From positions 186,001 to 250,000 of IMG/VR virus record IMGVR_UViG_3300028394_002328: a DNA stretch of 64,000 nucleotides. One strand, written 5' to 3'. The notes beneath the pieces were generated by a model, which saw only the letters and a program-made list of their open reading frames with translations, was not told the DNA's origin and ran no database searches. Position 1 is the first letter of the stretch. Each line of letters begins with the position of its first letter. Both the position numbers and the translations under genes were made by a program. Positions 5,545 to 59,590 of this stretch are shown here, piece after piece.

Positions 5545-5571
5545 AATAATTGAGTCCAGATAAATATATAC

Positions 5572-7142: not shown

Positions 7143-7149
7143 TCTAACA

Positions 7150-8013
7150 ATGTCACAGCGTTATACTGGCGGAATACTTTCAGCAGCATTAACTGGTTTG
7201 AATTCGCCAGTTACCACTGTTGAGTATTTGGTTGTCGCTGGTGGTGGCGGGGGTGGACGTGAAACTAATACTTCGGGTGTCGGTGGCGGTGGTGGTGCGG
7301 GTGGTTTACTAACTGCAACAGGGTTTTCTATAACAGTTGGAACTTCTTACACCGTTACGATTGGTGCTGGCGGTGCAGGGCTAAATACTTCGACAGGTGC
7401 AGTTGGAAACAACGGCTCTAATTCTGTTTTTGGTTCTATTACCGCAATTGCTGGTGGTGGCGGTGGAGGAACGACTTTACAAGCGGGTAATACTGGCGGT
7501 TCAGGTGGTGGTGGATCAATTTTTGGCGGTGGAGGTGCGGCTGGAACGGCTGGACAAGGTAATGCTGGCGGAACACACAACACAACTTATAACTCTGCTG
7601 GTGGTGGTGGTGGCGCAGGTTCAGTAGGCGGTAATGCTGGCGCTTATGGTGGTGGCTCTGGTGGGACAGGATTAAGTTCATCCATATCTGGCACACAAGT
7701 TCAGTACGCTGGCGGCGGCGGCGGCGCTACTACTTTAACAAACGCTTCTTTGGGTGGTGGTGGCGGGGGTGGTAATGGTGCGCTCTACTCAGCATCATCG
7801 TTCGGTGGTGGTGGTTTAGCCAATACAGGTGGTGGTGGCGGTGGGGGTTCAAATGGCCCTGCACCATCAGGCTCAGGAGGCTCTGGCATAGTCATCATCC
7901 GTTACCCATCATATCTAGCCTCGGCAACATCAACGACTGGAAGCCCACAAACATACATAGATGGCAGTTGGCGAGTGTATGTATGGGTAAGTAGTGGTAC
8001 AATAACTTTTTAA
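7150..8013 (+). CDS. glycine-rich domain protein, putative fibre/adhesin subunit
   Basis: VEYLVVAGGGGG ... GGSGIVIIRYP ... SSGTITF architecture. Confidence 0.75.
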   Translation: MSQRYTGGILSAALTGLNSPVTTVEYLVVAGGGGGGRETNTSGVGGGGGAGGLLTATGFSITVGTSYTVTIGAGGAGLNTSTGAVGNNGSNSVFGSITAIAGGGGGGTTLQAGNTGGSGGGGSIFGGGGAAGTAGQGNAGGTHNTTYNSAGGGGGAGSVGGNAGAYGGGSGGTGLSSSISGTQVQYAGGGGGATTLTNASLGGGGGGGNGALYSASSFGGGGLANTGGGGGGGSNGPAPSGSGGSGIVIIRYPSYLASATSTTGSPQTYIDGSWRVYVWVSSGTITF

Positions 8014-14580: not shown

Positions 14581-16575
14581 ATGCCAATAACAATTACAGG
14601 TGCAGCAGTTACAGGTGGAGCATTAATTACAGTAGCTGGCGATCCATATTTTCCATATGTTCCTTTATTATTGAACACAACAAGCACTAATACTCAAACA
14701 AATAACACTTTTTTAGATAACAGTACAAATAACTTCACGATTACTCGCAACGGAACTCCGACGCAGGGTTCTGTGACTCCGTATTGGCCTAATGGTCAGT
14801 GGAGTAATTATTTTAATGGTACCACGGATTATTTAAGCGTTCCTACTACTACTGCTTTACAGTTTGGCACAGGTGATTTTACTTTTGAATTTTGGATGTA
14901 TTTAAATTCAACCGTGAGCAATCTTGCTGAAATTTATAATACAGCCGACACTAACACTACAAATTACAGTCATTCAATAATTTGTAATTCTACAAATTTA
15001 GTGTTATATTTAAGTAGTACAGGAAGTTCTTGGAATATAGCGAGCGGCACTATTATAACTAGTAATGCTTCATTACTTAATACATGGGCCCATGTTGCTC
15101 TTGTAAGAAATGGAACGACATTTACAGTATATGTTAATGGGGTATCAAAAACTACAGTAACTTCTGCTTTGGCACTATTTTCTAACACTGGTAATATTAC
15201 TTTTGGGCATTTTCCAACTGGTTTTAATGATTACTTTCCGGGATATCTTTCAAATGTTCGTATTGTAAAAGGAACTGCAGTTTACACCGCCAACTTCACG
15301 CCACCGACAACCCCGCTTACCGCAATCACCAACACATCTCTTCTCACCTGCCAATCTAACCGTTTTATTGACAACAGTGCCAATGCTCTTGCAATCACAC
15401 TCAGCGGCACTCCCAAAGTCCAGGCATTCCAACCGTTTTCACCCTCCGCTTCGTACACCACTGCGGCGTATGGTGGAAGTGTGTATTTTAATGGGTCAAG
15501 CGATTATCTGTCGTTGACCAATTCAACGACATTAAACCCCGGAACGGGAAATTTCACACTTGAATATTGGGTGTATTTTAACGCACTAAATCAAGGAAAT
15601 ATATACGACGGGTCAATCAACGGAGTTTCTACAGCATTAAACGCATCCAGTCAATTTTCAGTTGGACAATCAAATGTAGCATATCTTTTGAATGACACTG
15701 TTGCGGCAGTTACAGGGCAATGGTATCACATTGCTATAGCAAGGTCTGGAACAACACTGTCACTATTCAAAAATGGAACAAGAGTAGCAACTGCAACAAA
15801 CTCTACTAATTTTGTTTCATCTACGGCAAATCGCATTGGCTGGAATGGAGTATCAATATATCTCAATGGATACGTCTCTAATTTGCGTTTTATTGTTGGT
15901 GGGACGCCTGTATATGACCCAACACAGACAACAATAACTGTTCCCACATCGCCAGTCAGTGCAAGTGCCACATTACTTGTCAATGGAACCAACGCAGGAA
16001 TTTACGACGCTGCGGTACAGAACAACGTGATTACAATCGGGGATGCTCAGGCCAGCACCACACAGTCTAAGTGGTCGCCAACGAGCATGAAGTTTGACGG
16101 AACCGGCGACTGGCTGACGGCTATTGACGGGCCGCAACTTCAGCTTGGTACGGGAGATTTTACAATTGACGGTTGGGTTTATTTGTCGGCAACTGGTGTT
16201 GCTTACGGGATTATTAGTAAAGGCACGGCGTCAACTGGGTGGTCTGTCAACGTCACTTCTGGCAACAAACTTCAGTTTAGCTATACCGCGTCTAACTTGA
16301 CCGGCGCTACCTCATTAGCTTCGGCTACTTGGTATTACTTTGCTGTTGTCCGGTCTGGAAGCGCAACCGAAAACTTAAAGGTCTATTTAAACGGAACGGC
16401 AGACGCTACCAGCGGCGGCGCTGTAACGGACAATTTTAATCAAACCAGCATTTTGTATGTTGGCGCAGACCGTGTTGGTGGAAGCGCACTAAACGGGTAT
16501 CTCCAAGACTTACGAATTACCAAAGGCGTTGCTCGCACTATCACAACACCAACATCAGCGTTCCCAACACAATAA
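14581..16575 (+). CDS. triple LamG/concanavalin A-like lectin domain protein (putative receptor binding)
   Basis: Three G(T/N)G(D/N)FT.E/D.W.Y ... W.H/Y.A ... SN.R/QDLR units; TAAATA motif at 14571. Confidence 0.78.
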   Translation: MPITITGAAVTGGALITVAGDPYFPYVPLLLNTTSTNTQTNNTFLDNSTNNFTITRNGTPTQGSVTPYWPNGQWSNYFNGTTDYLSVPTTTALQFGTGDFTFEFWMYLNSTVSNLAEIYNTADTNTTNYSHSIICNSTNLVLYLSSTGSSWNIASGTIITSNASLLNTWAHVALVRNGTTFTVYVNGVSKTTVTSALALFSNTGNITFGHFPTGFNDYFPGYLSNVRIVKGTAVYTANFTPPTTPLTAITNTSLLTCQSNRFIDNSANALAITLSGTPKVQAFQPFSPSASYTTAAYGGSVYFNGSSDYLSLTNSTTLNPGTGNFTLEYWVYFNALNQGNIYDGSINGVSTALNASSQFSVGQSNVAYLLNDTVAAVTGQWYHIAIARSGTTLSLFKNGTRVATATNSTNFVSSTANRIGWNGVSIYLNGYVSNLRFIVGGTPVYDPTQTTITVPTSPVSASATLLVNGTNAGIYDAAVQNNVITIGDAQASTTQSKWSPTSMKFDGTGDWLTAIDGPQLQLGTGDFTIDGWVYLSATGVAYGIISKGTASTGWSVNVTSGNKLQFSYTASNLTGATSLASATWYYFAVVRSGSATENLKVYLNGTADATSGGAVTDNFNQTSILYVGADRVGGSALNGYLQDLRITKGVARTITTPTSAFPTQ

Positions 16576-16651
16576 ATAATTAGTTCTTGGTAAACTAAGT
16601 ATCGTTCATAACAGGTTAAGATAAATACTTAATCTAGTACGGAATACTGTT

Positions 16652-17770
16652 ATGAAAATTAATCAAATTATCTTAGAAACGTCTGCTGGTGCTACTGGTT
16701 CAGGATCGGTAGCCACTGTTGCTAAACCTATGGGAGAAACACAAAGTAGATACCCAGAGGTAAAAGGTCTAAAGCCAATAGATAAACTTAACGGTAAGAA
16801 AAAAGGTCCATATAGCAACTCTCTTTCAGAAAGTAAAGTAGCAGAAGCAAAACTGGAAGAAGATGATTTAATTATAGTTCCTGGACAAAGCAAAAGATTC
16901 AAGCCAGGACTAATTTCAAAAGCGGAAGATAGAACTGACCATGAAGTTGAAATGGCATTAAGTGACTTATATCAAGCATATAAGAATGCTAAAAAAACTT
17001 ATATGCTTCTAAAAAATAGAACCGAAGAAGAAGGTCTTGAAGGGTGGGTACAAGAAAAGATTATCAAGGCTAATGACTATCTAACTGCTATTCGTGAATA
17101 TTACGAACATCAGGCTATACAAAATGAAATGACTGGTGGAGTTATTGGTAATGGTATGGCAGGTGAAAGTGCTACTAAAAAAGTAAATCCATATGCTGTT
17201 GGTATGTCACAAGCAATGAAATCAACAGGTGACAAACCACCTTTGAAAAAGAGTACGATAGTCAAAGGTCATCATATAGCAAAAAAGATTAAACAACAAG
17301 ATATTGAAGAAGGTTGGAAAAGCAAACTAGCAGGCGCCGCTCTTGCTGGTGCTGCTGCTTTTGGCGGGGGCGGTGCTCATGCAGGTGGAATGTCATTGCC
17401 TCCCGCAGGATTGACACCAGCCCAAGCTCAAGAATTTACAAACGCCCAATTTGCAGGACAACAAGCAATAAATCAACATGCTGCTCAACAAGCAGGAAAA
17501 ATTGACTATCGCAAAGATGGTCCAATTACAAAAAGTTCATTAGGACATAAACTAGAATATGGTATTCCTGTAAATGCCAAAGGTGATTTTATCAATCCTA
17601 ATAGATTACCAAACATTCATGAATTGCCTAGGGACGAAATAGAAGCTATGGCTGAAGCATATCAAGCTTGGCTTAAAGACTATTTGAGTCGTTGGCCCAA
17701 TGCTAAACAACAGGCAGATGGATCAATGCAAGGTCTCAAACCAGGTCTTGCTCCGATGTACCCTAAATAA
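16652..17770 (+). CDS. modular late protein, putative internal-head polyprotein
   Basis: Late motif at 16620; MKINQIILE start; unrelated blocks separated by Glu-ending linkers (LSE, VAE, AGE, IEE). Confidence 0.6.
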   Translation: MKINQIILETSAGATGSGSVATVAKPMGETQSRYPEVKGLKPIDKLNGKKKGPYSNSLSESKVAEAKLEEDDLIIVPGQSKRFKPGLISKAEDRTDHEVEMALSDLYQAYKNAKKTYMLLKNRTEEEGLEGWVQEKIIKANDYLTAIREYYEHQAIQNEMTGGVIGNGMAGESATKKVNPYAVGMSQAMKSTGDKPPLKKSTIVKGHHIAKKIKQQDIEEGWKSKLAGAALAGAAAFGGGGAHAGGMSLPPAGLTPAQAQEFTNAQFAGQQAINQHAAQQAGKIDYRKDGPITKSSLGHKLEYGIPVNAKGDFINPNRLPNIHELPRDEIEAMAEAYQAWLKDYLSRWPNAKQQADGSMQGLKPGLAPMYPK

Positions 17771-17779
17771 TTTGATACT

Positions 17780-20290
17780 ATGGCCAATACTTTAAGAAAA
17801 TTTCAATACATATTAGAAGGTATTGATCAAGAACATTTAACTGATATTTTAGTTAAACGGTTAAAATCACGCTATCCTGATATCAGTACAAAATACGAAG
17901 AAGATGTATTACATGATGCGGCTATGGATGTTGCATCTTTTCACGCTGGTGCAGAAGAATTAGGCACTAGTGATATTGGGGCAATGATTAGAGAAGTCAT
18001 TAAAAATTTAGAAAGATTTAATGAGCGTGGTCAGGGTGAAAAAATGATTCCAAACTCAGTTAGAGGTTGGAGAATGAATGAAGAAACAGAACCTGAGCGT
18101 GTAGTTAGACAATTAAAAGCAGCAAAAAAGTATTTAGGTCAAGATCCTGAACCAAAAAAAGAACCTGAAGAGAAAGAAACAAACGAATCATACTGGGGCG
18201 GACCTAGTCCAGCACAATTGCGTTTTAATCGTGCTTTAAAAAAACAACAAAATAGTCCTGAAAATAAAGCAGATAGAGAAAAGTTTCAAAAAGAACTAGA
18301 CCGTATTATGCCTCCGCCGAAAAAAGAGCCTGAAGACAAAGAGGTGACTGAAGGTGCTGCGATATCAACTAGTGGAAAAACTGACTCAGGTTACACTTGG
18401 AAGTTTGAAGCAGGGCGTGAAGTGCCTTTTAAAACAGATATAGATGTAAACACATTTATTAGAGTAACTGATCCTGCTGGTAAGACTGTTGCTGGTGTTT
18501 GGGCAGATGTAGCGGGTGATTCACTAGTAGTTGAATATTCTCAAGTGTTTGATGAAGAGTTAAGAGGCAAAGGTCTTTATACAGATTTGTTAAAAAGTTT
18601 AAGTAAACAGTATGATGTAACATCAGATACAGATACGAATAATGCCGCTGTTAGCATTTATAAACGGTTAGGTGCAGATTATGATGCTCGCCAAGAAAAG
18701 CATACATTGCGTAAACAAGGTGTAGCGGAAGGCTCAGACCAAAATTATTTGTCTCAGATACCCAACTTGACTTGGAAACCAGTAAGCCGTAGTGTATGGA
18801 ATACTATACAAGACGAAGGACTCGATGAAGAACAAGATGCACCTAACCATACTGATTGGGTGATGGCCAATTTGACGATTAGTCCAAAAGATTCACAGGC
18901 ACTGCAAGCATTTGACAATGACGCTATTGAAGATTTCAACAGATTTGACATACATCTAAAATCCCGTTACCCTGGACTCACTGACTTAATTGATTATGAT
19001 AGAGGAACTGTAACTATTGTAAAGACAGTAACAGAGCAAGGTGTGGCGGAAGGCCGAAAAAAGAAAAACAAAAAAACTTCAAGATCCTTAGGCAGATATT
19101 TCTTCCCGGGCTATGGCTATTATGGTAGTGGAGAATCTGGTGAAGGCGGTGGTGATGGCGGCGGAGGAGAAAGTATGGCGGAAGGCACTAATGTTGACAT
19201 TGGTGGTATACAATTAAATGTTGTGGCTGATGGAGCTGAGGTAATCATTCGTCCATCTGTAGATGGATATCAAGCTGGTTATGCAGTATTTGACCGTGAT
19301 GGTAGTACTCTAGTACCTGCTGATCTTGCTATAGATGAAGAGTTTCGTGGTCAAGGCATCGCTAAAACCATTTACGATTATGTAAAGAGTCTTGGATTTA
19401 CTATTCGTCGCAGTAGTGATCAAACCAAAGCTGGTAAACACTTTTGGGATAAAAATCGCGGAGAAGATAGTCAAGTATGGGAGCAAACAATGACACTAGA
19501 AGAACTTGATGAGGCATGTTGGAAAGGTTATCATAAAGAAGGCATGAAGACCATGTTTGGCAAACGCTATCCTAACTGTGTGAAGAACACTAATGAAGAC
19601 CACCAACAATGTCCTGAATGCGGTGGTCCAATGTTTAGTGAAGAAATGATTAACGAAAAGAAAGATGCTTGCTACTATAAAGTTAAGAGCCGTTATAAAG
19701 TATGGCCCAGTGCGTATGCCAGTGGTGCATTAGTAAAGTGTCGCAAAAAAGGTGCTAGCAACTGGGGCAATAGCACAAAAAATGAAAGTTCTATATTAGA
19801 AGGTCTAGAACAAACTGATGAAAACTTACATAAATGGTTCAAAGAGAAGTGGGTAAGATTTGGTCCTGATGGCAAGATACGCGGTGATTGTGCTAGAGGA
19901 GATGATAGTGAGGGTAAACCAAAATGTTTACCACAAAGTAAAGCACAGAATTTAGGTAAGAAGGGTCGTGCTAGTGCGGCTGCTAGAAAGCGTAGAGAAG
20001 ATCCAAACCCCGAGCGTAGTGGTAAAGCAATCAATGTTGCTACTAAAAAGAAAACTTCCGAGAGTTCAATTCTTCAAGGAATAAGTGAAACAAAAGGCTT
20101 ACCAATGCCAGGTTCGTATGAACAAGAAAATAAACCTTTTCTTAGAAAAGGTGAACAGAAACTTATGGCTCTTACTACTGAACAAGAAGAATTAGATGAG
20201 AAGTGGAGTAATAAGTATAAGAGAAGTATTAATTGTAACAATCCAAAAGGATTTTCACAAAAGGCTCATTGCCAAGGAAAAAAGAAATGA
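17780..20290 (+). CDS. modular polyprotein with two GNAT-like domains and Cys/Lys-rich C-terminal modules
   Basis: GNAT motif A twice (DEELRGKGLYTDL; DEEFRGQGIAKTIY); QGVAEG linker twice; CWKGY..PNCVK, DACYYKVKSRY.VWPSAYASG and KWS.KYKRSINC.NPKGFSQKAHC modules. Confidence 0.7.
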   Translation: MANTLRKFQYILEGIDQEHLTDILVKRLKSRYPDISTKYEEDVLHDAAMDVASFHAGAEELGTSDIGAMIREVIKNLERFNERGQGEKMIPNSVRGWRMNEETEPERVVRQLKAAKKYLGQDPEPKKEPEEKETNESYWGGPSPAQLRFNRALKKQQNSPENKADREKFQKELDRIMPPPKKEPEDKEVTEGAAISTSGKTDSGYTWKFEAGREVPFKTDIDVNTFIRVTDPAGKTVAGVWADVAGDSLVVEYSQVFDEELRGKGLYTDLLKSLSKQYDVTSDTDTNNAAVSIYKRLGADYDARQEKHTLRKQGVAEGSDQNYLSQIPNLTWKPVSRSVWNTIQDEGLDEEQDAPNHTDWVMANLTISPKDSQALQAFDNDAIEDFNRFDIHLKSRYPGLTDLIDYDRGTVTIVKTVTEQGVAEGRKKKNKKTSRSLGRYFFPGYGYYGSGESGEGGGDGGGGESMAEGTNVDIGGIQLNVVADGAEVIIRPSVDGYQAGYAVFDRDGSTLVPADLAIDEEFRGQGIAKTIYDYVKSLGFTIRRSSDQTKAGKHFWDKNRGEDSQVWEQTMTLEELDEACWKGYHKEGMKTMFGKRYPNCVKNTNEDHQQCPECGGPMFSEEMINEKKDACYYKVKSRYKVWPSAYASGALVKCRKKGASNWGNSTKNESSILEGLEQTDENLHKWFKEKWVRFGPDGKIRGDCARGDDSEGKPKCLPQSKAQNLGKKGRASAAARKRREDPNPERSGKAINVATKKKTSESSILQGISETKGLPMPGSYEQENKPFLRKGEQKLMALTTEQEELDEKWSNKYKRSINCNNPKGFSQKAHCQGKKK
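18716..19054 (+). repeat. dispersed repeat CAAGGTGT(A/G)GCGGAAG encoding QGVAE linker
   Basis: Copies at 18716-18733, 19037-19054, partial 19176-19186, and 41407-41422 on the minus strand (16/16 identical to 19037-19052). Confidence 0.8.
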
Positions 20291-20333
20291 AAGATTATGA
20301 TTTTTATTGGAACAGAAAAGGATACCCAAAGAT

Positions 20334-20774
20334 ATGTTAGTAGATAATTTAAAAGTACTGTTAGCTAGTACACAAGCGTTTGCTATCAAGTCACAAAACT
20401 TTCATTGGAATGTTGAAGGCAGTAATTTCCCACAATATCACGAATTCTTTAATACATTATATGAAGATGTAAATGCTACCATAGATCCAATTGCCGAGTA
20501 TATTAGAATCCTAGGTCATTACACACCAGGCAGTTTATCTAGATATGCTGAATTAAGTATTATTCAAGACCAAACAAAGATTCCTCGTGCTCAATTAATG
20601 TTTGCTGAATTATTACAAGATTGTCACACATTAAGCCAATTAGTTGTTAATATGTTTGATGAAGCAACAAATGAGCGTCAACAAGGCATTGCTAATTACA
20701 TGGCTGAACTACAAGACTTGTATGGTAAAAAAGCTTGGTTTATTAATTCCACACTTAAAACTGAGCGTGAGTAA
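20334..20774 (+). CDS. dps: Dps/ferritin-like DNA protection protein
   Basis: NFHWNVEG.NF.QYHEFF..LYE...D.IAEYIR.LG is the Dps signature; ATG at 20334 preferred over TTG 20307. Confidence 0.88.
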   Translation: MLVDNLKVLLASTQAFAIKSQNFHWNVEGSNFPQYHEFFNTLYEDVNATIDPIAEYIRILGHYTPGSLSRYAELSIIQDQTKIPRAQLMFAELLQDCHTLSQLVVNMFDEATNERQQGIANYMAELQDLYGKKAWFINSTLKTERE

Positions 20775-21547
20775 TGAGACTTAATGAATTTGTGGTTGAC
20801 GAAGAAATAGTACAAGATGCTATTGTTAGAATACCACAGACTGAAATATTCAGTCAAGGTGATGATTATATCGGTCAATTAGAACGAGCGGCTAGCACAC
20901 AAATAAGTGCGATGTTTAAAAAGTTAAAGCCTGTACCTGATGATCAGGATTTAAGATATGGTATTATTCCAAAAGATGACGTTGGTCAATATCATGTTAT
21001 TATAGTTAATAACACTGATAGAATAATTGGTGACTTAGTATTATCTCCAGTAAAAGATTTTCCATTACAACCTGCATATACTGTAGAGTTCGTTACTGTC
21101 GCAGAAGAATATCGTGGCATGGGTGTCGGTAATCTATTATATAAGATAGCACTTAGAGATCAGGGAATACAATTAATAGCAGGCGAAAGCCAAACAGTAG
21201 GTGGTCGTAGAAATTGGATCAGTTTAAGTAAAACACCCGGTGTTATGATATCAGGGTGGGGTTGGGTCAATGTAAGTGAACAGGCTAATAGTAATCCTGA
21301 ACTAGTTAAAATTCAAAAGAAATTTGAAAAGTCAATGACAAAAGCAGGAGCAAAAAGTTTAGGTGTAAATAAAGGCCCTTCGAATACACTGTCTCGTGCG
21401 ATTAATAAACATTGGTATTTGTTCCCAGTACATGCTGGTGAAAAAGAATTTAAAGCAATCAATAACTCAATAAAGATTTATTATAATGATGTGTACAATC
21501 TTCCATTTTTATACAAGGTTGGATTGTTAGCAAATTGGGGTAATTAA
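20774..21547 (+). CDS. GNAT-like acetyltransferase domain protein
   Basis: VEFVTVAEEYRGMGVGNLLY motif A and QT.GG...W; MRLNEF start. Confidence 0.65.
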   Translation: MRLNEFVVDEEIVQDAIVRIPQTEIFSQGDDYIGQLERAASTQISAMFKKLKPVPDDQDLRYGIIPKDDVGQYHVIIVNNTDRIIGDLVLSPVKDFPLQPAYTVEFVTVAEEYRGMGVGNLLYKIALRDQGIQLIAGESQTVGGRRNWISLSKTPGVMISGWGWVNVSEQANSNPELVKIQKKFEKSMTKAGAKSLGVNKGPSNTLSRAINKHWYLFPVHAGEKEFKAINNSIKIYYNDVYNLPFLYKVGLLANWGN

Positions 21548-21559
21548 CTAAATAATAAT

Positions 21560-23290
21560 ATGAGAGCATTAGAATTTTTAAACGAAACCCAAGTCTTGGA
21601 CGAAATAGATATGAGTCCAAGCTCATTAAAGCAGTTAGCAGCAGGCACCGGTGCCATGGCAGGTATGGAATTTGAAATGTATGTGCCTGATGTTGCAGGA
21701 GGTGAAGATGAAGATTCAAGCCCAGAACCTGATTATGATGAAGATCAACCTGCAAGAAGTCTTGACCAAATATATGAATTTTTTGAAGCCGATGGTGAGT
21801 GGAATAGCCCATTTGAAGTTGGTAGATTACATAGCAAATTACAAGAAGAATATACAGAATGGGTAAGTGAAAAAATAAGTGAAGATTGGGATCATTCTCC
21901 AACCGAACATGTATATCAATGGGCAAAAGAAAATATTGAATATGAAGATAGAGATGAACTTGAAAAAATAGTTGAAAAGGCTGTAGAAGAAGGTCATGGT
22001 AATGAAATATATGATCAAGCGGATGAGGCTTTTAGAGAATCTATGCTTGAAGAATATATGAATGATGACTCAAATGAAAGAGAGTTTTTAAGAGATTCAG
22101 GCATTAGATTCATGAGTGATATTGAATCAGGCTATGACATTACTTGGCCATATTGGACATATCCAGAGGTTGGAGGTGAAAGAACTATAAAACAAGTTGC
22201 TTTACAGTTTATGACAGACTTAGGTCTTAACAACATAGCGGTAAGTGATAGTTACCACGGTTCTTATTATATGTCAAGCGGAGGCAACGATTGGACACCT
22301 ATTGGCCGTAGTAAACCAAATGATACTTACACTATAGAGCCAGATGGTAGTCTTACATCAAAGAAAGAACCCAGTGATTCAGGTTTAGAATTTGTAAGTA
22401 ATCCATTGCCCTTAGATGAAATGATCAATAGTTTAAATGAAGTAGTTCAATGGGCTAGAACAAATATTTGTTATACTAATAGAAGTACAGGTTTACACAT
22501 GAATGTAAGTGTACCTGGGTGCAGCCGTGAAAAATTAGACTATGTAAAACTTGCGCTATTATTAGGTGATGAATATGTATTAGACCAATTTGGTCGTTCA
22601 GCAAATAGTTTCGCAAAAAGTGCAATGAGTAGTTTACAGTCTAGAGCCACTTATATGCAAAGTGAACCGGAGTTACTTACCTTTTTTGATGAAATGAGAA
22701 AGGGTTTAAGTGTAGAGGCAGCAAAACTTATTCATAGTGGAAATACTAGCAAATATGTTAGTATTAATACTAAAGAGGGTTATATTGAATTTCGCAGCCC
22801 AGGTGGCGATTGGTTAAATGAAGATATACCTAAATTAGAAAATACACTATTAAGATTTGTAGTAGCATTAGATGCCGCTTGTGACCCACAAAAATATCGT
22901 ACAGAATATCTTAAAAAATTATATAAATTATTAAAACCTACAACTAAAGGCGATGCACTTGATGTTTTTGCCAAGTATTCATCTGGACAATTACAGAAAC
23001 AAGACTTAATAACTTTACTTAAAAGAGCAAGAGGTATACAAAAACCTATTCAGCCTATTCAAGCAAAAGTAAGTGCTGGCCCTGCTGAACCTGCATTTGG
23101 TCAACCACCAAGTAGGATGCCTGAATATCAAATTTATGACAGTAGAACTGGTGAAGAATATGAACTTTTTCAGGCATACGATGATGAAGCCGCGTTGAGT
23201 CGTTTAGATGATTATCGCCGCATGGCTAGAAATAGTGCTAGTTCGCTAGATCCTAATAGGTTTGTTCTCCGTCATGTGGTAAATGGATAA
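21560..23290 (+). CDS. putative amidoligase (COOH-NH2 ligase type)
   Basis: GMEFE, IEPDGSL, GLEFVS.P, STGLHMNVS, KYVSIN, IEFRSPG motifs; MRALEFLNE start. Confidence 0.75.
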   Translation: MRALEFLNETQVLDEIDMSPSSLKQLAAGTGAMAGMEFEMYVPDVAGGEDEDSSPEPDYDEDQPARSLDQIYEFFEADGEWNSPFEVGRLHSKLQEEYTEWVSEKISEDWDHSPTEHVYQWAKENIEYEDRDELEKIVEKAVEEGHGNEIYDQADEAFRESMLEEYMNDDSNEREFLRDSGIRFMSDIESGYDITWPYWTYPEVGGERTIKQVALQFMTDLGLNNIAVSDSYHGSYYMSSGGNDWTPIGRSKPNDTYTIEPDGSLTSKKEPSDSGLEFVSNPLPLDEMINSLNEVVQWARTNICYTNRSTGLHMNVSVPGCSREKLDYVKLALLLGDEYVLDQFGRSANSFAKSAMSSLQSRATYMQSEPELLTFFDEMRKGLSVEAAKLIHSGNTSKYVSINTKEGYIEFRSPGGDWLNEDIPKLENTLLRFVVALDAACDPQKYRTEYLKKLYKLLKPTTKGDALDVFAKYSSGQLQKQDLITLLKRARGIQKPIQPIQAKVSAGPAEPAFGQPPSRMPEYQIYDSRTGEEYELFQAYDDEAALSRLDDYRRMARNSASSLDPNRFVLRHVVNG

Positions 23291-23305
23291 CAAAAGGAGT
23301 ATATT

Positions 23306-23743
23306 ATGAAAAAAATTATAGCAATCGCATTATTGGTAATATCAACTACGGTTGACGCACAAAAAACACCACAAGGTGTTATATACGATTTCCCTATTAC
23401 TAGAGTATTAGATGGTGATACAGTAGCATTTCAGGCTACATTTTTACCACCTCCACTTAAACAAGAACTTAGTATAAGAGTATTTGGTGTAGATACTCCT
23501 GAAAAAGGATTTAGAGCCAAATGTCCACAAGAAGATCAAAGAGGACAGGCTGCTTCCGCATTTACAAAAGATTTAGTATCTCATGCACAAAAACGCCAAG
23601 TTGTTATCATGGACTGGGATAAATTTGGTGGGCGTGTATTAGGCGATGTAATCCTTGATGGTAAGAGTTTACGTGAACAACTTATTACAAATAATTATGC
23701 TAGAGCATACTTTGGCGAAGCAAAACAATCTTGGTGTAATTAA
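23306..23743 (+). CDS. staphylococcal nuclease-like (thermonuclease) with signal peptide
   Basis: RVLDGDT, IRVFGVDTPE, DKFGGRVLG motifs; MKKIIAIALLVISTTVDA signal peptide. Confidence 0.85.
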   Translation: MKKIIAIALLVISTTVDAQKTPQGVIYDFPITRVLDGDTVAFQATFLPPPLKQELSIRVFGVDTPEKGFRAKCPQEDQRGQAASAFTKDLVSHAQKRQVVIMDWDKFGGRVLGDVILDGKSLREQLITNNYARAYFGEAKQSWCN

Positions 23744-23748
23744 TATAA

Positions 23749-24324
23749 ATGATAACTGAATCATTCGTTGGTGAAACTGCGGTTATGGAGTTATATAAAA
23801 AACTCCCTGGCCTATCCAAACACAACTATAATACCATTGATAAATTAATGCGGATAATTGCACAAAAGCATGAACTTAGTAGTGATGCATTGAATGATTT
23901 ATTTGTGAAAAAATTTAATCGTAGTCCTGATAGTTGGGTTAAAGGAAAATTAGACGAATCTGATGTTGAATGTGATTTAGAACAAGAAGTAGAAAAGTTT
24001 GTAGATTGGGCTGCTAAAAAGTTGAATTTACAAACCACTCCCAAAATTGAACTAAGCATGGATACTGAAGAAGCACAAACTAATCATCATACTGGTAGCC
24101 ATACTGATGGTGATAACAGTGTTTGGGTATATGCTAAAAACCGTAATTTGGTTGACATACTAAGAACGGTATTTCACGAATTGGTTCATGTCAGACAAGG
24201 TGAATTGAATATGATTAAACCGGGATCTAGTTACCCTGGCAGCCCAATAGAAGTCATGGCAGATTGTTTAGCTGGCAAGTATATTAAGATATACGGTGAA
24301 AAGAATCACCATATTTTCCAATGA
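23749..24324 (+). CDS. zincin-like metallopeptidase domain protein
   Basis: RTVFHELVHVRQ (HExxH) with downstream E in SPIEV. Confidence 0.65.
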   Translation: MITESFVGETAVMELYKKLPGLSKHNYNTIDKLMRIIAQKHELSSDALNDLFVKKFNRSPDSWVKGKLDESDVECDLEQEVEKFVDWAAKKLNLQTTPKIELSMDTEEAQTNHHTGSHTDGDNSVWVYAKNRNLVDILRTVFHELVHVRQGELNMIKPGSSYPGSPIEVMADCLAGKYIKIYGEKNHHIFQ

Positions 24325-24725
24325 GACATTTTGAATTTATTACCGAACAGAAATCAATCACACAACATACCGAAGGTGGTTCGTTAGAAGGGTATGTTAT
24401 GTCTACAGATAAACCCAATATTAATAACTACTTACAAAGTCAAGGTGCAACACCTGAGTTAATAGACAATATCGCAAAACGGTATAAAACTTTGGGGTTA
24501 ATAAGAAACATGTATGTAGATGATGATTATCGTGGTCAAGGCATTGGTAATGATTTAGTAAGCAACGCAATTGATGATGCTGCTAATAACGGCGCAGAAG
24601 CCATTATATTAATCTCAGATACCGACGAAGATAACCCATTTGATTTAACAAAATGGTATGAGGGTTTTGGGTTTGAAGTAGTGGGTACGGCGGGTAATAA
24701 CCCTGTAATGATACTTGATCTTTAA
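24321..24725 (+). CDS. GNAT family acetyltransferase
   Basis: MYVDDDYRGQGIG motif A and L..WYEGFGF motif B; MRHFEFITE start. Confidence 0.8.
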   Translation: MRHFEFITEQKSITQHTEGGSLEGYVMSTDKPNINNYLQSQGATPELIDNIAKRYKTLGLIRNMYVDDDYRGQGIGNDLVSNAIDDAANNGAEAIILISDTDEDNPFDLTKWYEGFGFEVVGTAGNNPVMILDL

Positions 24726-24743
24726 GTCATCTTGTGTTATCAT
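24715..24743 (+). promoter_or_regulatory. sigma70-type promoter, probably giving a leaderless tilS-like mRNA
   Basis: TTGATC-17 nt-TATCAT; ATG at 24750 lies 6 nt after the -10 box and has no SD. Confidence 0.5.
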
Positions 24744-24749
24744 ACACAG

Positions 24750-25343
24750 ATGCTTAAATTACTTTTTCCATTACCCAAAAAATTGACCGTTGCTTGTAGC
24801 GGCGGTGTAGATAGTATGGCTGTATTAGATTTCTTGCGTAGAAATCATGAGGTTACTGTGGCCTTTTATCATCATAGTACACCTAACAGCGATGCTGCAT
24901 ATCAATTTGTAGCCAATTATTGTAGTGAACATGATTTACCACTATTCTTTGGAAAACTAAACGAATCCAAACCCAAAGAATTAAGTCAAGAAGAGTTTTG
25001 GAGAAATAAGCGTTACGATTTTCTTCGTGGATTTGACACGGTAATTACAGCACATCATTTAGATGATTGTGTAGAAACATATATTTGGTCATCATTACAC
25101 GGAAAAGCAAAACTCCCACATAGATATGTCCGTGGAAATGTTATGCGACCATTTTTAACTACTCCAAAAACAGAATTCATTTCATGGTGTGAACGACACC
25201 ATGTTAAATGGAGTGAGGATATCAGCAATAAAGACACTAATTATACTAGAAATTATATCAGACACGAACTAATGCCACATGCATTAAAGGTTAATCCTGG
25301 ATTAAGAACTACTGTTAAAAAAATTGTTGAGCGAGGTGGTTAA
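24750..25343 (+). CDS. tilS: TilS-like PP-loop ATPase (tRNA(Ile)-lysidine synthase catalytic domain only)
   Basis: VACSGGVDSM, TAHHLDD.VET, RPFL, W.ED.SN.D..YTRNYIRH; lacks the TilS C-terminal domains. Confidence 0.75.
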   Translation: MLKLLFPLPKKLTVACSGGVDSMAVLDFLRRNHEVTVAFYHHSTPNSDAAYQFVANYCSEHDLPLFFGKLNESKPKELSQEEFWRNKRYDFLRGFDTVITAHHLDDCVETYIWSSLHGKAKLPHRYVRGNVMRPFLTTPKTEFISWCERHHVKWSEDISNKDTNYTRNYIRHELMPHALKVNPGLRTTVKKIVERGG

Positions 25344-25985
25344 ATTAAACCTAGTATTGCATTATTCATGAATCATCCAGAATGCAGTGTATTATGTTGC
25401 TCTGGAATGTACGAAGCATTATCATGTGACTTTAATATAGAAATATTGCCGTTTAAAGATGTTAAATTAAAAAAACTTAAGAAGTATCACATTGTAGCCT
25501 TTCCTGGTGGTATTGGCGATAGCGATTCGTTTGAACATCTACTTAAAAACCGTGCTGATGATGTAACCGAATATATTCATAACGGTGGTAGGTACTTGGG
25601 CATTTGCATGGGAGCATACTGGGCAGGCAAATACTATTTTAAGTTGCTTGATGATGTAGAACCAGTACAATATATCAAACGCCGTAAAAGCGATATTAAA
25701 CGAAGTTATGCAACCATAGCAGATGTATTATGGAATGATGAACCACAATCAATGTACTTTTATGATGGGTGTGCATTGATAGGTGACCAAAATAAAATGA
25801 GTATTGTGTCAACCTATGCCAATGGTGATCCAATGGCTATCTACCAAAAACGAATTGGTTTGATTGGGTGCCACCCTGAAAGTATGCCAAGTTGGTACGA
25901 CAGACCCTATCTACAATCATATTGGCATGAATTTGCCCATCATAAACTACTATTATCATTTGTCAACAACTTAATGAAAGCGTAA
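25344..25985 (+). CDS. class I glutamine amidotransferase-like (BPL_N-type) protein; probable ATT start
   Basis: FPGG, YLGICMGAY (nucleophile Cys), CHPE (His-Glu); in-frame IKPSIALF precedes first ATG (25368) and follows SD GAGGTG. Confidence 0.72.
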   Translation: MKPSIALFMNHPECSVLCCSGMYEALSCDFNIEILPFKDVKLKKLKKYHIVAFPGGIGDSDSFEHLLKNRADDVTEYIHNGGRYLGICMGAYWAGKYYFKLLDDVEPVQYIKRRKSDIKRSYATIADVLWNDEPQSMYFYDGCALIGDQNKMSIVSTYANGDPMAIYQKRIGLIGCHPESMPSWYDRPYLQSYWHEFAHHKLLLSFVNNLMKA

Positions 25986-34880: not shown

Positions 34881-35084
34881 ATGAAAGAATTTGTGCTTAA
34901 AGATATGAATCAATACACAGTTAGAGTTAAGAAAAATAGGTGTTTGAGACCACAAGAGTTGACTCATATTGAGTTTATCCAAGAAAGTAAAAACGATAAA
35001 GGTGAAGTAGTAGATACTTCAACCTATCAATTTTTCTTAACTGACAGTGAAATTAAAACTCTAGTAGCCAATTTGGTTGAATAA
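34881..35084 (+). CDS. hypothetical protein
   Basis: 67 aa ORF in operon. Confidence 0.6.
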   Translation: MKEFVLKDMNQYTVRVKKNRCLRPQELTHIEFIQESKNDKGEVVDTSTYQFFLTDSEIKTLVANLVE

Positions 35085-35085
35085 T

Positions 35086-35631
35086 ATGGCTAAGTTTTAT
35101 TCAACCAAAACTTATGGTAATGACAGAGGATTAAGTTGTTGTTTTAGACAATGGCGAGCTAAACACAGTCATTGTAGTACATTACATGGATACAGTATTG
35201 GTATTAAATTAGTATTTGAATGCGAAACATTGGATGACAAAAACTGGTGTATGGACTTTGGTGGACTAAAAGAATTCAAAGCATGGGCTGATTATATGTT
35301 TGACCATACACTAATTATTGCTGAAGATGATCCTCATCTAGAATTTTTCAAGCAAATGGCATTGATTGACACAAACTGGACTTTGCCCGAAACCGGTCCA
35401 GATGAAATGCGAGTTGATAGAAATAATTTCGAGCCATACCAAAGAGGCTCTCTATGTGATTTACGCATTGTAGAAGGTGTAGGTTGTGAGATGTTTGCTA
35501 AAATGGCATATGACAAAATGGCTGAGTTGTTAGACGGTGGTAATATGCGATATCCCATTAACCCTAATGTAAGAATTAAAAGCGCCGAGGTTTTCGAGCA
35601 TGGAGCCAACTCAGCTACCTACGAGGGTTAA
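35086..35631 (+). CDS. queD: 6-carboxy-5,6,7,8-tetrahydropterin synthase QueD
   Basis: SHCSTLHGYS, MDFGGLK, FDHT, GCEMFA, VFEHGANSA. Confidence 0.88.
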   Translation: MAKFYSTKTYGNDRGLSCCFRQWRAKHSHCSTLHGYSIGIKLVFECETLDDKNWCMDFGGLKEFKAWADYMFDHTLIIAEDDPHLEFFKQMALIDTNWTLPETGPDEMRVDRNNFEPYQRGSLCDLRIVEGVGCEMFAKMAYDKMAELLDGGNMRYPINPNVRIKSAEVFEHGANSATYEG

Positions 35632-35782
35632 ACTTTGGCGATTATGGAGCAAGGCATTGGGAGAAAAGTCCGGTGCCACGGATCAAGAAAGTGACCTAAT
35701 AGCTTTGGTTAGAACTTGTATTGTGATATCATATATAATTACAAATATGTTTATCATAGCAGGGATTATACGACATTGGTAA
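35600..35782 (+). CDS. small membrane protein
   Basis: WRLWSKALGEK...D.IALVRT followed by a hydrophobic helix. Confidence 0.55.
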   Translation: MEPTQLPTRVKLWRLWSKALGEKSGATDQESDLIALVRTCIVISYIITNMFIIAGIIRHW

Positions 35783-35800
35783 TTAATTTAGGAATTTAAA

Positions 35801-35989
35801 ATGAGTGATGTTAGAAATCGCATGGCAGAATTAATGGAACCTATTGACAAGCAAATTATGATGTGCGATAATAGGGAAGATTTGCTAATGTTAGCCTGTG
35901 CTATGTTGACTTCAGTTAAAACGATATTTGACCAAGAGTTAGGTAAAAAAGCCCGTATCCAATTATTTAAAGATTATATAGATGAGTAA
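35801..35989 (+). CDS. hypothetical protein
   Basis: 62 aa ORF with AGGA SD. Confidence 0.6.
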   Translation: MSDVRNRMAELMEPIDKQIMMCDNREDLLMLACAMLTSVKTIFDQELGKKARIQLFKDYIDE

Positions 35990-36833
35990 TATTAAGATAA
36001 GCGAACTGTTCTATTCCATACAAGGAGAAGGTCGTTATATGGGGGTGCCTAGTGTGTTCCTTCGCACATTTGGCTGTAATTTTACCTGTGATGGTTTTGG
36101 TATGCCACGCGGAGGAACAAGTATTGAACGAATTCAAGTTGGATTGTTACATGAAGGAAATCCTTATAAAAATTATAAAGATTTGCCCCTTGTAAGTACA
36201 GGTTGTGACAGTTATGCAAGTTGGGATCCAGCATTTAAAGATTTGAGTCCTGTACTTACTACTGATGCTATCGTTAATCGCATTATGGAAATTCTTCCAT
36301 ATAATGAATGGCGTGATGAACATTTGGTTATTACAGGTGGAGAACCATTGCTAGGTTGGCAAAAACAATATCCTGATCTATTAAATCATCTTAAAATGCA
36401 TGGTTTAAAAGAAATTACTTTTGAAACAAATGGTACTCAAAAACTAACTTCAGAATTTAAATCAGCATTAAAAGAATGGAGCAAATGGTACAATAGAGAA
36501 ATTACATTTAGTGTTAGTGCCAAACTGCCTTGTAGCGGTGAAATATGGGAAGATGCTATTAAACCTAAGGTAGTATGTGAATATGAACAATATGGCACTT
36601 CCTATCTAAAGTTTGTTATTGCTACAGAACAAGATTTTGCTGATGCCAAAAATGCTATTGCTGAATTTCGTGGTGCAGGATTTAAAGGACATGTATATCT
36701 AATGCCAATTGGTGGTGTGGAAAGTATTTACTCTATGAATAATAAAAATGTAGCCATGCTAGCAATGAAGCATGGACTAAGATACAGCGATAGACTCCAG
36801 GTACCTCTGTTCAAAAACGAATGGGGTACTTGA
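35982..36833 (+). CDS. queE: 7-carboxy-7-deazaguanine synthase QueE (radical SAM)
   Basis: ISELFYSIQGEG, FLRTFGCNFTC...CDS, VITGGEP, FETNG, SVSAKL, RLQVPLF. Confidence 0.92.
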   Translation: MSNIKISELFYSIQGEGRYMGVPSVFLRTFGCNFTCDGFGMPRGGTSIERIQVGLLHEGNPYKNYKDLPLVSTGCDSYASWDPAFKDLSPVLTTDAIVNRIMEILPYNEWRDEHLVITGGEPLLGWQKQYPDLLNHLKMHGLKEITFETNGTQKLTSEFKSALKEWSKWYNREITFSVSAKLPCSGEIWEDAIKPKVVCEYEQYGTSYLKFVIATEQDFADAKNAIAEFRGAGFKGHVYLMPIGGVESIYSMNNKNVAMLAMKHGLRYSDRLQVPLFKNEWGT

Positions 36834-53784: not shown

Positions 53785-53999
53785 GTAAAGAAGCCATGCG
53801 TGAGGCTCTAGAAGCATTAGAGTGGATGCGTGTGGCTTTCAAACAAAACAGTCAGGGCAGACAAGTTGCTGATTCGGCAATAGAAGCATTGAAAATGGCA
53901 CTTGGGCCTGAGGTTTTGGAATTTGACATACTTGACAAGTACGACCAAGTAATTTACAATACAGGAAACATTAAAGGAAATTTTACAAATGAAAATTAG
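53781..53999 (+). CDS. hypothetical protein
   Basis: ATGA coupling to ligase; its 3' end doubles as a promoter. Confidence 0.5.
   Translation: MSKEAMREALEALEWMRVAFKQNSQGRQVADSAIEALKMALGPEVLEFDILDKYDQVIYNTGNIKGNFTNEN
53932..53960 (+). promoter_or_regulatory. sigma70 promoter inside the 53781 ORF
   Basis: TTGACA-17 nt-TACAAT. Confidence 0.65.
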
Positions 54000-57487: not shown

Positions 57488-57565
57488 ATTACCAAATAAC
57501 TTTAATTTTTCCAATAATTATGACATAATTTATTGTGTCACAAATTCTTTCAAGATATATACTTC

Positions 57566-59576: not shown

Positions 59577-59590
59577 ATGAGAGAACTAAA

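Follow-up and report, generated by a model that had tools for sequence, protein, structure and literature searches.

The window analysed here is a 64,000-nucleotide stretch (bases 186,001-250,000) of contig Ga0304730_1000008, a 335-kb freshwater jumbo-phage contig of the Rak2/Atu_ph07 (T4-superfamily) group. A Megablast search of the region against 50,697 phage records found nothing. Positions 16652-24725 of the window are occupied by a cluster of genes encoding unrelated proteins, several of which share a short T4-like N-terminal leader. The cluster lies directly downstream of tail-fibre-like genes on the same strand. It is preceded at 16621-16629 (+) by ATAAATACT, a motif resembling the T4 late promoter, 31 nt upstream of the first leader gene. 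ATAAATA occurs 16 times on the + strand and 2 times on the - strand of the window, mostly just upstream of genes, including those at 60978 and 5572; a promoter function is inferred.

The first gene (16652-17770, +) encodes a 372-aa protein with the leader MKINQIILE (16652-16678), followed by the conserved motif SAGATGSGSVATVAKPMG and a Gly/Ala-rich hydrophobic stretch. It matched no Pfam or PHROG family, but relatives carry the same leader plus post-leader motif. The second (17780-20290, +) encodes an 836-aa modular protein with the leader-like start MANTLRKFQYILE (17780-17818), about 12 modules including two GNAT-like domains, and four small basic two-Cys modules at 19514-20287. Next comes a Dps/ferritin-like protein (20307-20774, +; Pfam Ferritin E=7e-16; phrog_3636) with a TTG start and no leader, probably not part of the leader system. 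A 257-aa GNAT-like protein (20774-21547, +) begins MRLNEFVVDE, and a 576-aa amidoligase-like protein (21560-23290, +; Pfam Amidoligase_2), preceded by CTAAATAAT, begins MRALEFLNE. A 145-aa staphylococcal-nuclease-like protein (23306-23743, +; Pfam SNase E=3e-10) has no leader but an N-terminus resembling a secretion signal (MKKIIAIALLVISTTVDAQ), as read from the sequence. It is followed by a 191-aa zincin-like putative metallopeptidase (23749-24324, +; HELVH at aa 143) that begins MITE, and by a 134-aa GNAT acetyltransferase (24321-24725, +; Pfam Acetyltransf_7 E=1e-9) that begins MRHFEFITE. MITE is a shortened leader: orthologues of the putative peptidase begin MNTNEIIVE, MKAREYISE and MRANQFITE, and most short orthologues carry full leaders. 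Its HExxH motif is invariant in all 24 homologues that cover that part of the protein, and its Atlas neighbours carry Peptidase_M78 or DUF3920.

Outside the cluster, a 452-aa protein (38991-40349, -) begins MRIKELLE and gave only weak hits to a kinase-like PHROG and to ASCH. A 533-aa protein (40349-41950, -) begins MNIKELFE and contains a GP88 domain. A 525-aa protein (60978-62555, +), preceded by ATAAATACT, carries a second leader type, MRDLLNLIQTLSE; its relatives begin MKTLRDYINLIETAQ followed directly by QGVAEG. A 131-aa protein (53989-54384, +), with a weak, sub-threshold match to the RyR domain, has the leader-like start MKISELSE. Its membership in the system is uncertain, and the RyR-domain protein located beside DNA ligase in phage Phosso has no leader.

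A T4-like leader on unrelated proteins

An earlier note, based on the sequence alone, had drawn attention to these N-termini and to Glu-terminated linkers in the 836-aa protein. This observation is confirmed: all of the N-termini that it listed are present, and MKISELSE had been overlooked. The pattern M[RKN]xx[EQDI][FLI]x(1-3)E matches 7 of the 81 ORF starts of the window, four of them within 16652-24725, as compared to 33 of 19,251 internal positions (0.17%) and 0 of 416 internal Met residues (binomial P about 1e-10). Although this pattern was written after seeing the data, the enrichment was replicated independently, with 32 of 522 unique ORFs matching in related array loci against 8 of 1,746 in head-module loci of the same clade. 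Over 155 kb of the same contig only 8 of 172 ORFs match, four of them in the cluster. Lys, Arg, Asn, Ile and Glu are common after start codons in AT-rich phages, but chance or compositional bias is refuted by these counts. Moreover, the F/L and E positions are fixed whereas the codons vary.

Related contigs hold arrays of unrelated proteins starting MRAxEF[ILV]xE. This is the same EF-I-x-E core as in the capsid-targeting sequence of T4, for which the T4 record gives MKTYQEFIAE for IPII and IPIII, MKTFKEFT..ITE for IPI and MAKINELLRE for gp24 (the latter comparable to MRIKELLE). In the leaders MRALEFLNE, MRHFEFITE, MRLNEFVVDE and MKINQIILE, the P3 residue is I, L, V or F. We considered that the leader could be a DNA-level cassette signal, but its codons vary synonymously and the upstream DNA is unrelated, indicating selection at the peptide level. 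The leader does not need to sit at the N-terminus: orthologues of the 576-aa protein keep it, and in 1445-1509-aa fusion proteins the amidoligase module is directly preceded by an internal leader-like LRREFALLE↓D (here and below, ↓ marks the position following the Glu).

ClpA/B-like, ClpX-like, ClpS and ClpP proteins are encoded in the window, and N-terminal tags direct proteins to ClpXP and ClpAP, raising the possibility that the leader is a recognition tag timing degradation or unfolding by the phage's own Clp machinery rather than a capsid address. This is very unlikely, since the leader also occurs internally, matches the T4 capsid-targeting core and the N-termini of head proteins of the clade, and does not fit the N-degron (Leu, Phe, Tyr or Trp at position 1).

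A modular protein with a recurrent 18-base joint

The earlier note had described the modules of the 836-aa protein as bounded by hydrophobic-X-E sites. Such sites exist at aa 13, 136, 191, 317, 424, 468, 578, 606, 626, 674, 770 and 807, but this criterion alone means little, because 30 of the 75 Glu residues fit it. Three features are beyond chance: the [LIVMFA]xE-G form (6 observed against 1.8 in shuffles, a value reached in 40 of 5000 shuffles), the reuse of these sites as module borders in relatives, and the fixed 18-base spelling of the main joint.

Joint 1 (18716-18733, +) is CAAGGTGTAGCGGAAGGC, encoding QGVAE↓G with P1 Glu at aa 317, and joint 2 (19037-19054, +) is CAAGGTGTGGCGGAAGGC, encoding the same peptide with P1 Glu at aa 424. 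Joint 3 (19169-19186, +) is a degenerate copy, GAAAGTATGGCGGAAGGC, encoding ESMAE↓G with P1 Glu at aa 468. A differently spelled joint, SSILE↓G (19787-19804, +), has its P1 Glu at aa 674, and a second copy of it, SSILQGISE↓T, ends at aa 770. The remaining borders are VTE↓G, ELDE↓A/K, MINE↓K and NTNE↓D. A further copy of the main joint, QGVAEA, is found in the 533-aa protein at 41405-41422 (aa 178).

Close relatives swap whole modules exactly at QGVAE↓G. Joint 1 is a cassette border in the relatives L009 and L011 (our labels), and at joint 3 the homology to L011 resumes after KKSIAE↓G. Modules are also shuffled in T4-like cyanophages, and the same modules occur directly behind a leader elsewhere, as in MKTKEFTTE↓GWSQKYKK of locus L015, MKSFKQFQE↓SWSNKYKK of Bellamy gp122 and MRAKEFIKE↓ of locus L019. 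A Glu at fixed distance precedes every copy of the four two-Cys modules. Relatives add ParB-like, PARP/ART-like, deaminase, nucleotidyltransferase and HExxH modules, although a Pfam search of eight long joint-bearing polyproteins left most modules unnamed. An AlphaFold2 model of the 836-aa protein, built from a shallow alignment, shows folded islands separated by low-confidence linkers, with 11 of the 12 sites in or next to such linkers. The model is poor (mean pLDDT 45) and was used only for its order/disorder profile, so this argument is weak.

The main joint, but not the leader, is conserved at the DNA level. Among 22 copies, 21 Ala codons are GCG and 16 Val codons are GTG, although each makes up 9% of its family in this genome. 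The exact 18-mer CAAGGTGTGGCGGAAGGC was found in at least 120 IMG/VR contig stretches and 154 copies, in all cases in frame in long open frames with unrelated flanks. In four lake metagenomes, contig breakpoints pile up at both QGVAE↓G joints, contigs breaking or diverging at 18713, 18716, 18733 and 18734 for joint 1 and at 19033, 19035, 19052 and 19054 for joint 2. We considered that the GTG could be an internal start codon, but 6 of the 22 copies have GTA and this would not explain the fixed GCG.

These data raise the possibility that the joints are only recombination linkers, maintained because they allow modules to be exchanged in frame, within uncut multidomain proteins that may or may not be in the virion. 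In this view the encoded peptide would be a neutral flexible linker and the leader a shared N-terminal helix with some other role. Polyvalent proteins with GNAT, ART, ParB and peptidase domains are a described class (PMC5512222), and such domains appear here and in relatives. However, a pure DNA site would not need to be in frame and on the sense strand in all 154 copies, nor to end in Glu like the differently spelled joints (SSILE↓G, ELDE↓K, MINE↓K, VTE↓G), and it would not explain why the same modules sit directly behind cleavable-looking leaders elsewhere. We therefore regard this alternative as possible but unlikely.

Protease context and virion evidence

The functional map of the T4 capsid-targeting sequence and the (L/I)-X-E rule of its prohead protease gp21 have been described (PMC9026906). 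T4-type internal proteins carry an N-terminal propeptide of about 10-19 aa with the capsid-targeting consensus, ending in (L/I)-x-E. Homologues of this protease family (Peptidase_S77) are present in K64-1, pEa_SNUABM_47, Atu_ph07 and more than 600 environmental contigs (a lower bound), and Group 2.2 jumbo phages share the gp21 orthologue (PMC7824862). Capsid, scaffold and core proteins of the clade start with [LI]-x-E motifs, and the T4 gp23 site FLTE65↓A aligns with YLQE↓S, PLME↓N and MLRE↓S. One 338.5-kb contig holds both an S77 protease (locus L132) and a leader-plus-joint polyprotein (locus L275). Two alignment-based scans and one close-relative scan of IMG/VR, where the family is too abundant to be covered in full, returned protease loci of other phages only, none of them a near-identical relative of this phage. 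Positions 103,961-259,195 of the window's own contig (155 of 335 kb) hold tail, neck, fibre, replication and chaperone genes, but no portal, S77 protease or capsid gene. The protease is therefore inferred for this genome from its clade.

The 576-aa leader protein is homologous (E=7e-29) to Atu_ph07 gp196, which is encoded two genes upstream of the portal gene and was found in virions by mass spectrometry with 14 unique peptides. This evidence is indirect. The regions of the cultured relatives Atu_ph07 and Phosso that we read show no comparable leader arrays, and the proteome could be linked only through gp196 and the small post-portal protein gp199.

The cluster itself encodes a second candidate for processing, the zincin-like HExxH protein, which also occurs inside the 1445-1509-aa fusions next to the nucleotidyltransferase and amidoligase modules. 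It could act in the cytoplasm or by self-cleavage without the prohead protease, as proposed for the metallopeptidase domains of polyvalent proteins such as P1 DdrB (PMC5512222). We consider this improbable: the Glu-P1, hydrophobic-P3 pattern is the signature of gp21-type proteases and not of a known zincin family, the putative peptidase itself carries a leader, suggesting that it is cargo, and its catalytic activity is inferred from sequence alone.

A proposed system for building an injected protein load

The earlier note inferred that these genes are magazines of small enzymes and peptides that are packaged, cut apart in the head and injected with the DNA. Our analysis supports this interpretation only in part. 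We propose that the region is an effector locus of a T4-superfamily jumbo phage, in which unrelated enzymes carry an 8-13-residue leader (consensus M-R-A-x-E-F-[ILV]-x-E) that would bring them into the prohead core and would then be removed after its last Glu by the gp21-type protease. The same protease would cut the joints of the 836-aa protein inside the head, releasing small proteins and basic two-Cys peptides that leave with the DNA; predicted new N-termini include GSDQNYLSQIPNLTWKPVSR, GTNVDIGGIQ and TQVLDEIDMSPSSLK. The 18-base spelling of QGVAE↓G would provide in-frame homology at which modules are exchanged between genes and between phages, so that the set of modules is reshuffled without breaking the reading frame. 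The leaders with their enrichment and peptide-level conservation, the joints with their DNA-level conservation and their role as natural breakpoints, the presence of the protease family in the clade and the virion location of one homologue are shown, whereas targeting, cleavage, packaging and injection are inferences.

We consider this model somewhat more likely than not. Besides the missing protease gene in the part of the contig that was read, the polyprotein of the closest relatives starts MSSILKGIGK, without the leader, and the cluster includes genes without leaders (the Dps-like protein and the nuclease), which the earlier note had not mentioned, nor had it mentioned the HExxH protein. 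P3 and P2 of the main joint are Val and Ala, whereas T4 prefers Leu or Ile at P3, so that cleavage there would depend on the specificity of this clade's own protease. The fixed spelling of the joint, also missed by the note, shows a constraint that a protease site alone does not explain; the joint is not only, and perhaps not mainly, a protease site.

The closest known system is that of the T4 internal proteins IPI, IPII and IPIII and Alt, in which a short Glu-ending leader with the core E-F-[ILV]-x-E is attached to unrelated, fast-changing proteins of phages of the same superfamily with an S77 protease, and in which core proteins are also cut into several pieces (PMC9026906, PMC3012670). Here the leader is one residue shorter and lacks the T4 Tyr4, the putative cargo consists mostly of enzymes of 130-580 aa plus a 12-module polyprotein, and the leaders come in arrays and also occur internally. 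In the giant phages phiKZ, 201phi2-1 and SPN3US, many head-internal proteins are cut after Glu at a three-residue motif by a gp21 homologue (PMC5694885). These phages belong to a different jumbo lineage, their motif is S/A/G-X-E or A-X-E, their propeptides are often longer than 100 aa, and no shared short leader or DNA-level joint has been described for them. Polyvalent proteins of phages and conjugative elements combine two to fifteen conflict-related domains (GNAT, ART, ParB, kinase, metallopeptidase), are encoded near late or packaging genes, show extensive mosaicism and are proposed to be delivered with the DNA (PMC5512222). The 836-aa protein shares the multidomain, mosaic architecture, but its domains are separated by one recurring, Glu-ending joint with a fixed nucleotide spelling, and the T4-type leaders point to an external (prohead) protease. 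In polymorphic toxins (CdiA VENN, Rhs core end) and in the His boxes of T-even tail fibres, a short conserved motif likewise marks the point where variable modules are exchanged by recombination. Those systems swap one terminal module, whereas here many internal modules in a row are flanked by the same in-frame 18-mer, which also looks like a protease site. No description of leader arrays or of the joint in jumbo phages was found in the body of literature searched.

A more far-reaching possibility, which we put forward only tentatively, is that CAAGGTGTGGCGGAAGGC is a universal in-frame cassette joint of a large group of environmental T4-superfamily phages, serving at once as the homology for exchange of effector modules between genes and genomes and as the site where the prohead protease cuts the assembled polyprotein. 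Together with a portable capsid-targeting leader, this would give these phages an exon-shuffling-like system for building and constantly renewing the protein load they inject with their DNA.

Proteins injected with phage DNA are the first weapons against host defences, but they are known in detail only for a few model phages. If the leader and the joints work as proposed, sequence alone would identify the injected protein load of a very abundant group of uncultured freshwater jumbo phages, and hundreds of unknown modules would become candidate anti-defence or host-takeover factors. The leader and joint could also be tested as tools for loading foreign proteins into large capsids, as was done with the T4 capsid-targeting sequence. 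The fixed in-frame joint would be a new example of how viruses organise modular evolution inside a reading frame.

Genomic context and N-terminal leaders

The window (bases 186,001-250,000) is part of a 335,035-bp freshwater metagenome contig, JGI 3300028394 Ga0304730_1000008, also listed as IMGVR_UViG_3300028394_002328. Its family-B DNA polymerase is 43-50% identical to those of the jumbo myoviruses Phosso, Atu_ph07, 121Q and CBB, which represent the Rak2/Atu_ph07 branch of the T4 superfamily, called 'group 2.2' in PMC7824862. The locus of interest lies directly downstream of a long run of tail-fibre-like genes on the same strand, and upstream of the polymerase. The sequence ATAAATA, which resembles the T4 late promoter TATAAATA, is strongly strand-biased in the window (16 copies on the + strand, 2 on the - strand) and sits 10-45 nt upstream of many genes, for example at 16621-16629, 60964-60972 and 5560-5568. 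Atu_ph07 has a gp55-like late sigma factor.

All the N-termini quoted in the earlier note are present, so that its observation holds, and one more was found at 53989 (MKISELSE). Written as M[RKN]xx[EQDI][FLI]x(1-3)E, the pattern fits 7 of 81 ORF starts in the window, whereas it fits 33 of 19,251 internal positions and none of 416 internal Met residues. Because this pattern was written after inspection of the data, it was checked on other sequences. In loci retrieved by protein similarity to two genes of the region, 32 of 522 distinct ORFs begin with the strict nine-residue form, many of them in arrays, for example MRALEFLNE, MRATEFLSE, MRAHIFLYE, MRANQFITE and MRANEFINE in a row. In contrast, only 8 of 1,746 ORFs located around the head genes of the same clade do so. 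Over 155 kb of the window's own contig, 8 of 172 ORFs match, four of them inside the locus described here. Chance, considered as a rival explanation, is very unlikely.

The leader codons vary synonymously (AGA/CGA/CGC/CGG, GCA/GCC/GCT/GCG, GAA/GAG, TTT/TTC) and the upstream DNA is unrelated. The peptide is therefore what is conserved. The proteins located behind the leader are unrelated to each other and include two GNAT acetyltransferases, an amidoligase-like protein, an HExxH protein, a GP88-domain protein and several proteins with no family. The start MITE is a shortened leader, since orthologues of this protein start with MNTNEIIVE, MKAREYISE and MRANQFITE. Directly behind the leader of the 372-aa protein (16679-16735), a second conserved motif, x-AG-x-x-GS[VI]A-x-V-A-x-P-x-G, recurs behind leaders of otherwise different proteins in related loci (L235, L018:15933, L015:16423 and L022:7894); it might be a second determinant for binding the prohead core. 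The 372-aa gene and the following polyprotein gene (16652-20290) are in the same reading frame, separated only by one TAA stop, which overlaps a CTAAATAAT motif, and 9 bases. This is probably a coincidence, but read-through would fuse them.

A staphylococcal-nuclease-like gene with a typical secretion signal instead of a leader (23306-23743) sits in the middle of the leader cluster, which suggests a secreted or periplasmic nuclease. The cluster is followed by a PP-loop ATPase and a class-I glutamine amidotransferase and, further on, by a protein whose start (MSNIKISELFYSIQGEGRYMGVPSVFLRTF) looks, judging by eye only, like the radical-SAM enzyme QueE (24732-25985 and 35077-36833). Phosso has folE and queE-like genes near its polymerase, and the phage may modify its DNA with a 7-deazaguanine. 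The leader arrays of some relatives are interspersed with small ORFs whose starts look, again by eye only, like GIY-YIG homing endonucleases (L022:5150-5815, 7145-7816, 15396-16043, 18101-18799 and 20083-20808; L029:16280-16909). If true, this would fit a very recombinogenic locus.

The phage also encodes its own chaperone and protease set (87-2351, 57533-58765, 58762-58983, 59090-59536, 59552-59896 and 62605-63195), namely a ClpA/B-like ATPase, a ClpX-like ATPase with a zinc finger, ribosomal protein bS21, Hsp20, the N-degron adaptor ClpS and ClpP. DnaJ, a carbonic anhydrase and Cpn10 lie just outside the window on the same contig. Since Clp genes are present, the leader could be a Clp-recognition tag, but we consider this very unlikely.

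Comparison with T4 head proteins and protease context

The leaders were compared with sequences taken from the T4 record (an arrow marks the position after the terminal Glu): IPII and IPIII, MKTYQEFIAE↓A; IPI, MKTFKEFTSTTTPVSTITE↓A; gp24, MAKINELLRE↓S; gp22, MLKEQLIAE↓A; gp21, MNEPQLLIE↓T; gp23, ...FLTE↓AEIGG. The core E-F-[ILV]-x-E of the new leader is the core of the T4 capsid-targeting sequence, and MRIKELLE↓S and MNIKELFE↓G resemble the gp24 propeptide. In T4, the first ten residues of IPIII suffice for packaging, residues 4 and 7 matter for targeting and residues 8 and 10 for processing; gp21 cuts after Glu in L/I-X-E, propeptides are 7-65 residues long, and core proteins are cut into several fragments (PMC9026906). 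T4-like cyanophages bridge the two groups: in S-PRM1 a protein starts with MKTYNQFVLE, and Bellamy gp122 is MKSFKQFQE followed directly by one of the small modules of the window's polyprotein.

Searches with T4 gp21 identified homologues in the Rak2-type phages K64-1 and pEa_SNUABM_47 and in Atu_ph07. An alignment of these identified hundreds of environmental contigs, and one of the latter proteases identified more than 600 further stretches at 75-80% identity. Two of them score as Pfam Peptidase_S77, and the neighbouring capsid protein as Gp23. In these head modules the small post-portal protein, the acidic core protein, the protease, the scaffold and the capsid protein all begin with [LI]-x-E motifs, for example MLLLEIFE↓P, MNKTYEQLIEFIINE↓Q and MTKELLE↓SRWGETKDALLE↓G. 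In an alignment with T4 gp23, the known cleavage site FLTE65↓A falls on YLQE↓S, YLAE↓S, PLME↓N and MLRE↓S, with Leu63 and Glu65 invariant. One 338.5-kb contig carries both an S77 protease (locus L132) and a polyprotein that starts with MKLFDFFE↓S and has repeated GV[AE]E↓G joints (locus L275). For the window's own genome, positions 103,961 to 259,195 of the contig contain sheath, gp13, gp15, a 2620-aa protein, fibres, replication and chaperone genes, but no portal, protease or capsid gene was found in this stretch, which is the main gap in the argument. Two head-module loci (L154:5273-5286 and L155:2967-2980) carry one copy of the joint described below (GLGVAEG, same spelling) inside the 884-aa protein encoded just upstream of the portal gene; it could be due to chance, or be a processing site in a head or tail-tube-associated protein.

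An experimental anchor comes from the 576-aa leader protein, which has cultured homologues only in Atu_ph07 and RsoM2USA. The Atu_ph07 homologue is gp196, encoded two genes upstream of the portal gene (BLASTP E=7e-29). In the published virion proteome, gp196 has 14 unique peptides and 30% coverage (Table S5 of PMC6102473). The small leader-like post-portal protein gp199 is also listed there, with one peptide. At least one family of the cluster is therefore a virion component in a relative.

Modular organization of the 836-aa protein

The 836-aa product of 17780-20290 has two GNAT-like parts, several unknown parts and four small, basic, two-Cys modules. Its C-terminal third matches hypothetical proteins of 365 T4-like cyanophage records, where the same modules occur in other orders. 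The four two-Cys modules (19514-20287, aa 579-836; CWKGY..., DACYYKVKSRYKVWPSAYASGALVKC..., WFKEKWVRFGPDGKIRGDC...C..., WSNKYKRSINCNNPKGFSQKAHC) are shared with hundreds of T4-like cyanophages, and the third one is nearly invariant across ten otherwise divergent relatives. Only part is covered by Pfam DUF5872; the modules could be DNA-binding internal peptides.

Among relatives the modules are shuffled freely. Some of them sit directly behind a leader in other phages, as in the related loci L015 (MKTKEFTTE↓GWSQKYKK), L019 (MRAKEFIKE↓ plus the last two modules) and L030 (MRASEFLNE plus the second GNAT). Every copy of the four small modules is preceded by Glu at a fixed distance, with a hydrophobic residue two positions before it. 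In the two closest relatives (L009, 1082 aa; L011, 1170 aa), whole cassettes are inserted or replaced exactly at ...QGVAE↓G..., ...VTE↓K/G... and ...SIAE↓G.... Weak ParB-like and PARP/ART-like matches were seen in relatives' polyproteins.

In still larger fusion proteins (1445-1509 aa), a nucleotidyltransferase, the HExxH domain and the amidoligase module are joined, and the amidoligase module is then preceded by an internal copy of the leader, for example SLRREFALLE↓DEY. Leader and joint are thus interchangeable, which fits a cleavage or recognition site better than a signal that depends on the N-terminus. It is also possible that cutting would be performed by the cluster's own zincin-like putative peptidase, which has an invariant HExxH and Peptidase_M78-like neighbours. 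Self-processing has been proposed for such domains (PMC5512222). We regard this alternative as unlikely.

On its own, the 'hydrophobic-x-E' form of the sites is not significant, as it fits 30 of the 75 Glu residues of the protein, whereas the E-G form is modestly enriched (6 observed against 1.8). The AlphaFold model is poor (mean pLDDT 45). Its confident islands are separated by low-confidence stretches that contain 11 of the 12 proposed sites, but 63% of all residues are also of low confidence.

The 18-base joint as a DNA element

The joint QGVAE↓G is written CAA GGT GT(G/A) GCG GAA GGC in the window, and the same spelling is used in phages whose shared proteins are only about 45% identical. 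In loci not selected for the motif, 21 of 22 Ala codons are GCG and 16 of 22 Val codons are GTG, with no GTT, whereas GCG and GTG each make up 9% of their codon family in this genome. An exact search for the 18-mer in IMG/VR returned at least 120 stretches, where we estimate that one or two would be expected by chance. All 154 copies found lie in frame on the sense strand of long open frames (median 563 codons), all spacings between copies are multiples of three, and the flanking sequences are unrelated. Many of these ORFs begin with leaders, and in some of them the leader runs straight into the joint: MRATEFIIE-GVAEG, MRINEILVE-QGVAEG and MKTLRDYINLIETAQ-QGVAEG. A copy of the joint also sits in the window's 533-aa leader protein, at 41405-41422 on the minus strand.

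Contigs of four lake metagenomes were then aligned to 16652-22651 and revealed strain-level breakpoints exactly at the two joints. Loose ends or contig ends lie at 18713, 18716, 18733 and 18734, and at 19033, 19035 (three contigs), 19052 and 19054, and one contig matches up to 18733 and then continues with other sequence. About 9 of 24 loose ends, out of a total of 106, lie within 4 bases of the four joint edges, which make up about 0.6% of the stretch; since these are only 24 of the 106 loose ends and the contigs come from a de Bruijn assembler, this is an indication and not a count. In one natural variant (metagenome run X9), the cassette between the two joints (18734-19036) is replaced by other sequence that has an in-frame stop four codons after joint 1 and stops just before joint 2, so that the polyprotein seems to be split into two genes at the joints. 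The only in-frame start for the downstream part would be the GTG inside joint 2. This variant rests on 30-base consensus ends only.

The joints are therefore natural recombination points. This does not contradict the protease idea, because a purely DNA-level site need not be in frame or end in Glu. It does mean, however, that the conservation of this joint cannot be credited to the protease alone, and that the account given in the earlier note is incomplete. That interpretation, according to which these genes encode proteins that are packaged, cut apart in the head and injected with the DNA, is only partly supported. The leaders, the spelling of the joints and their coincidence with breakpoints are observed here, whereas targeting to the head, packaging, cleavage and injection are inferred. 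A model combining targeting, cleavage and shuffling appears somewhat more likely than not. Uncut polyvalent proteins, in which the joints would serve as recombination linkers, are the strongest of the alternatives but remain unlikely.

T4 capsid-targeted internal proteins, Glu-specific head proteases of giant phages and polyvalent proteins are already known. What differs here, and was not found in the literature within reach of our searches, is the occurrence of arrays of enzymes carrying a portable T4-type leader in an abundant uncultured jumbo-phage group and, above all, of an in-frame 18-base joint shared by unrelated modules across many genomes. If the dual role of the joint is confirmed, this element would deserve a category of its own.
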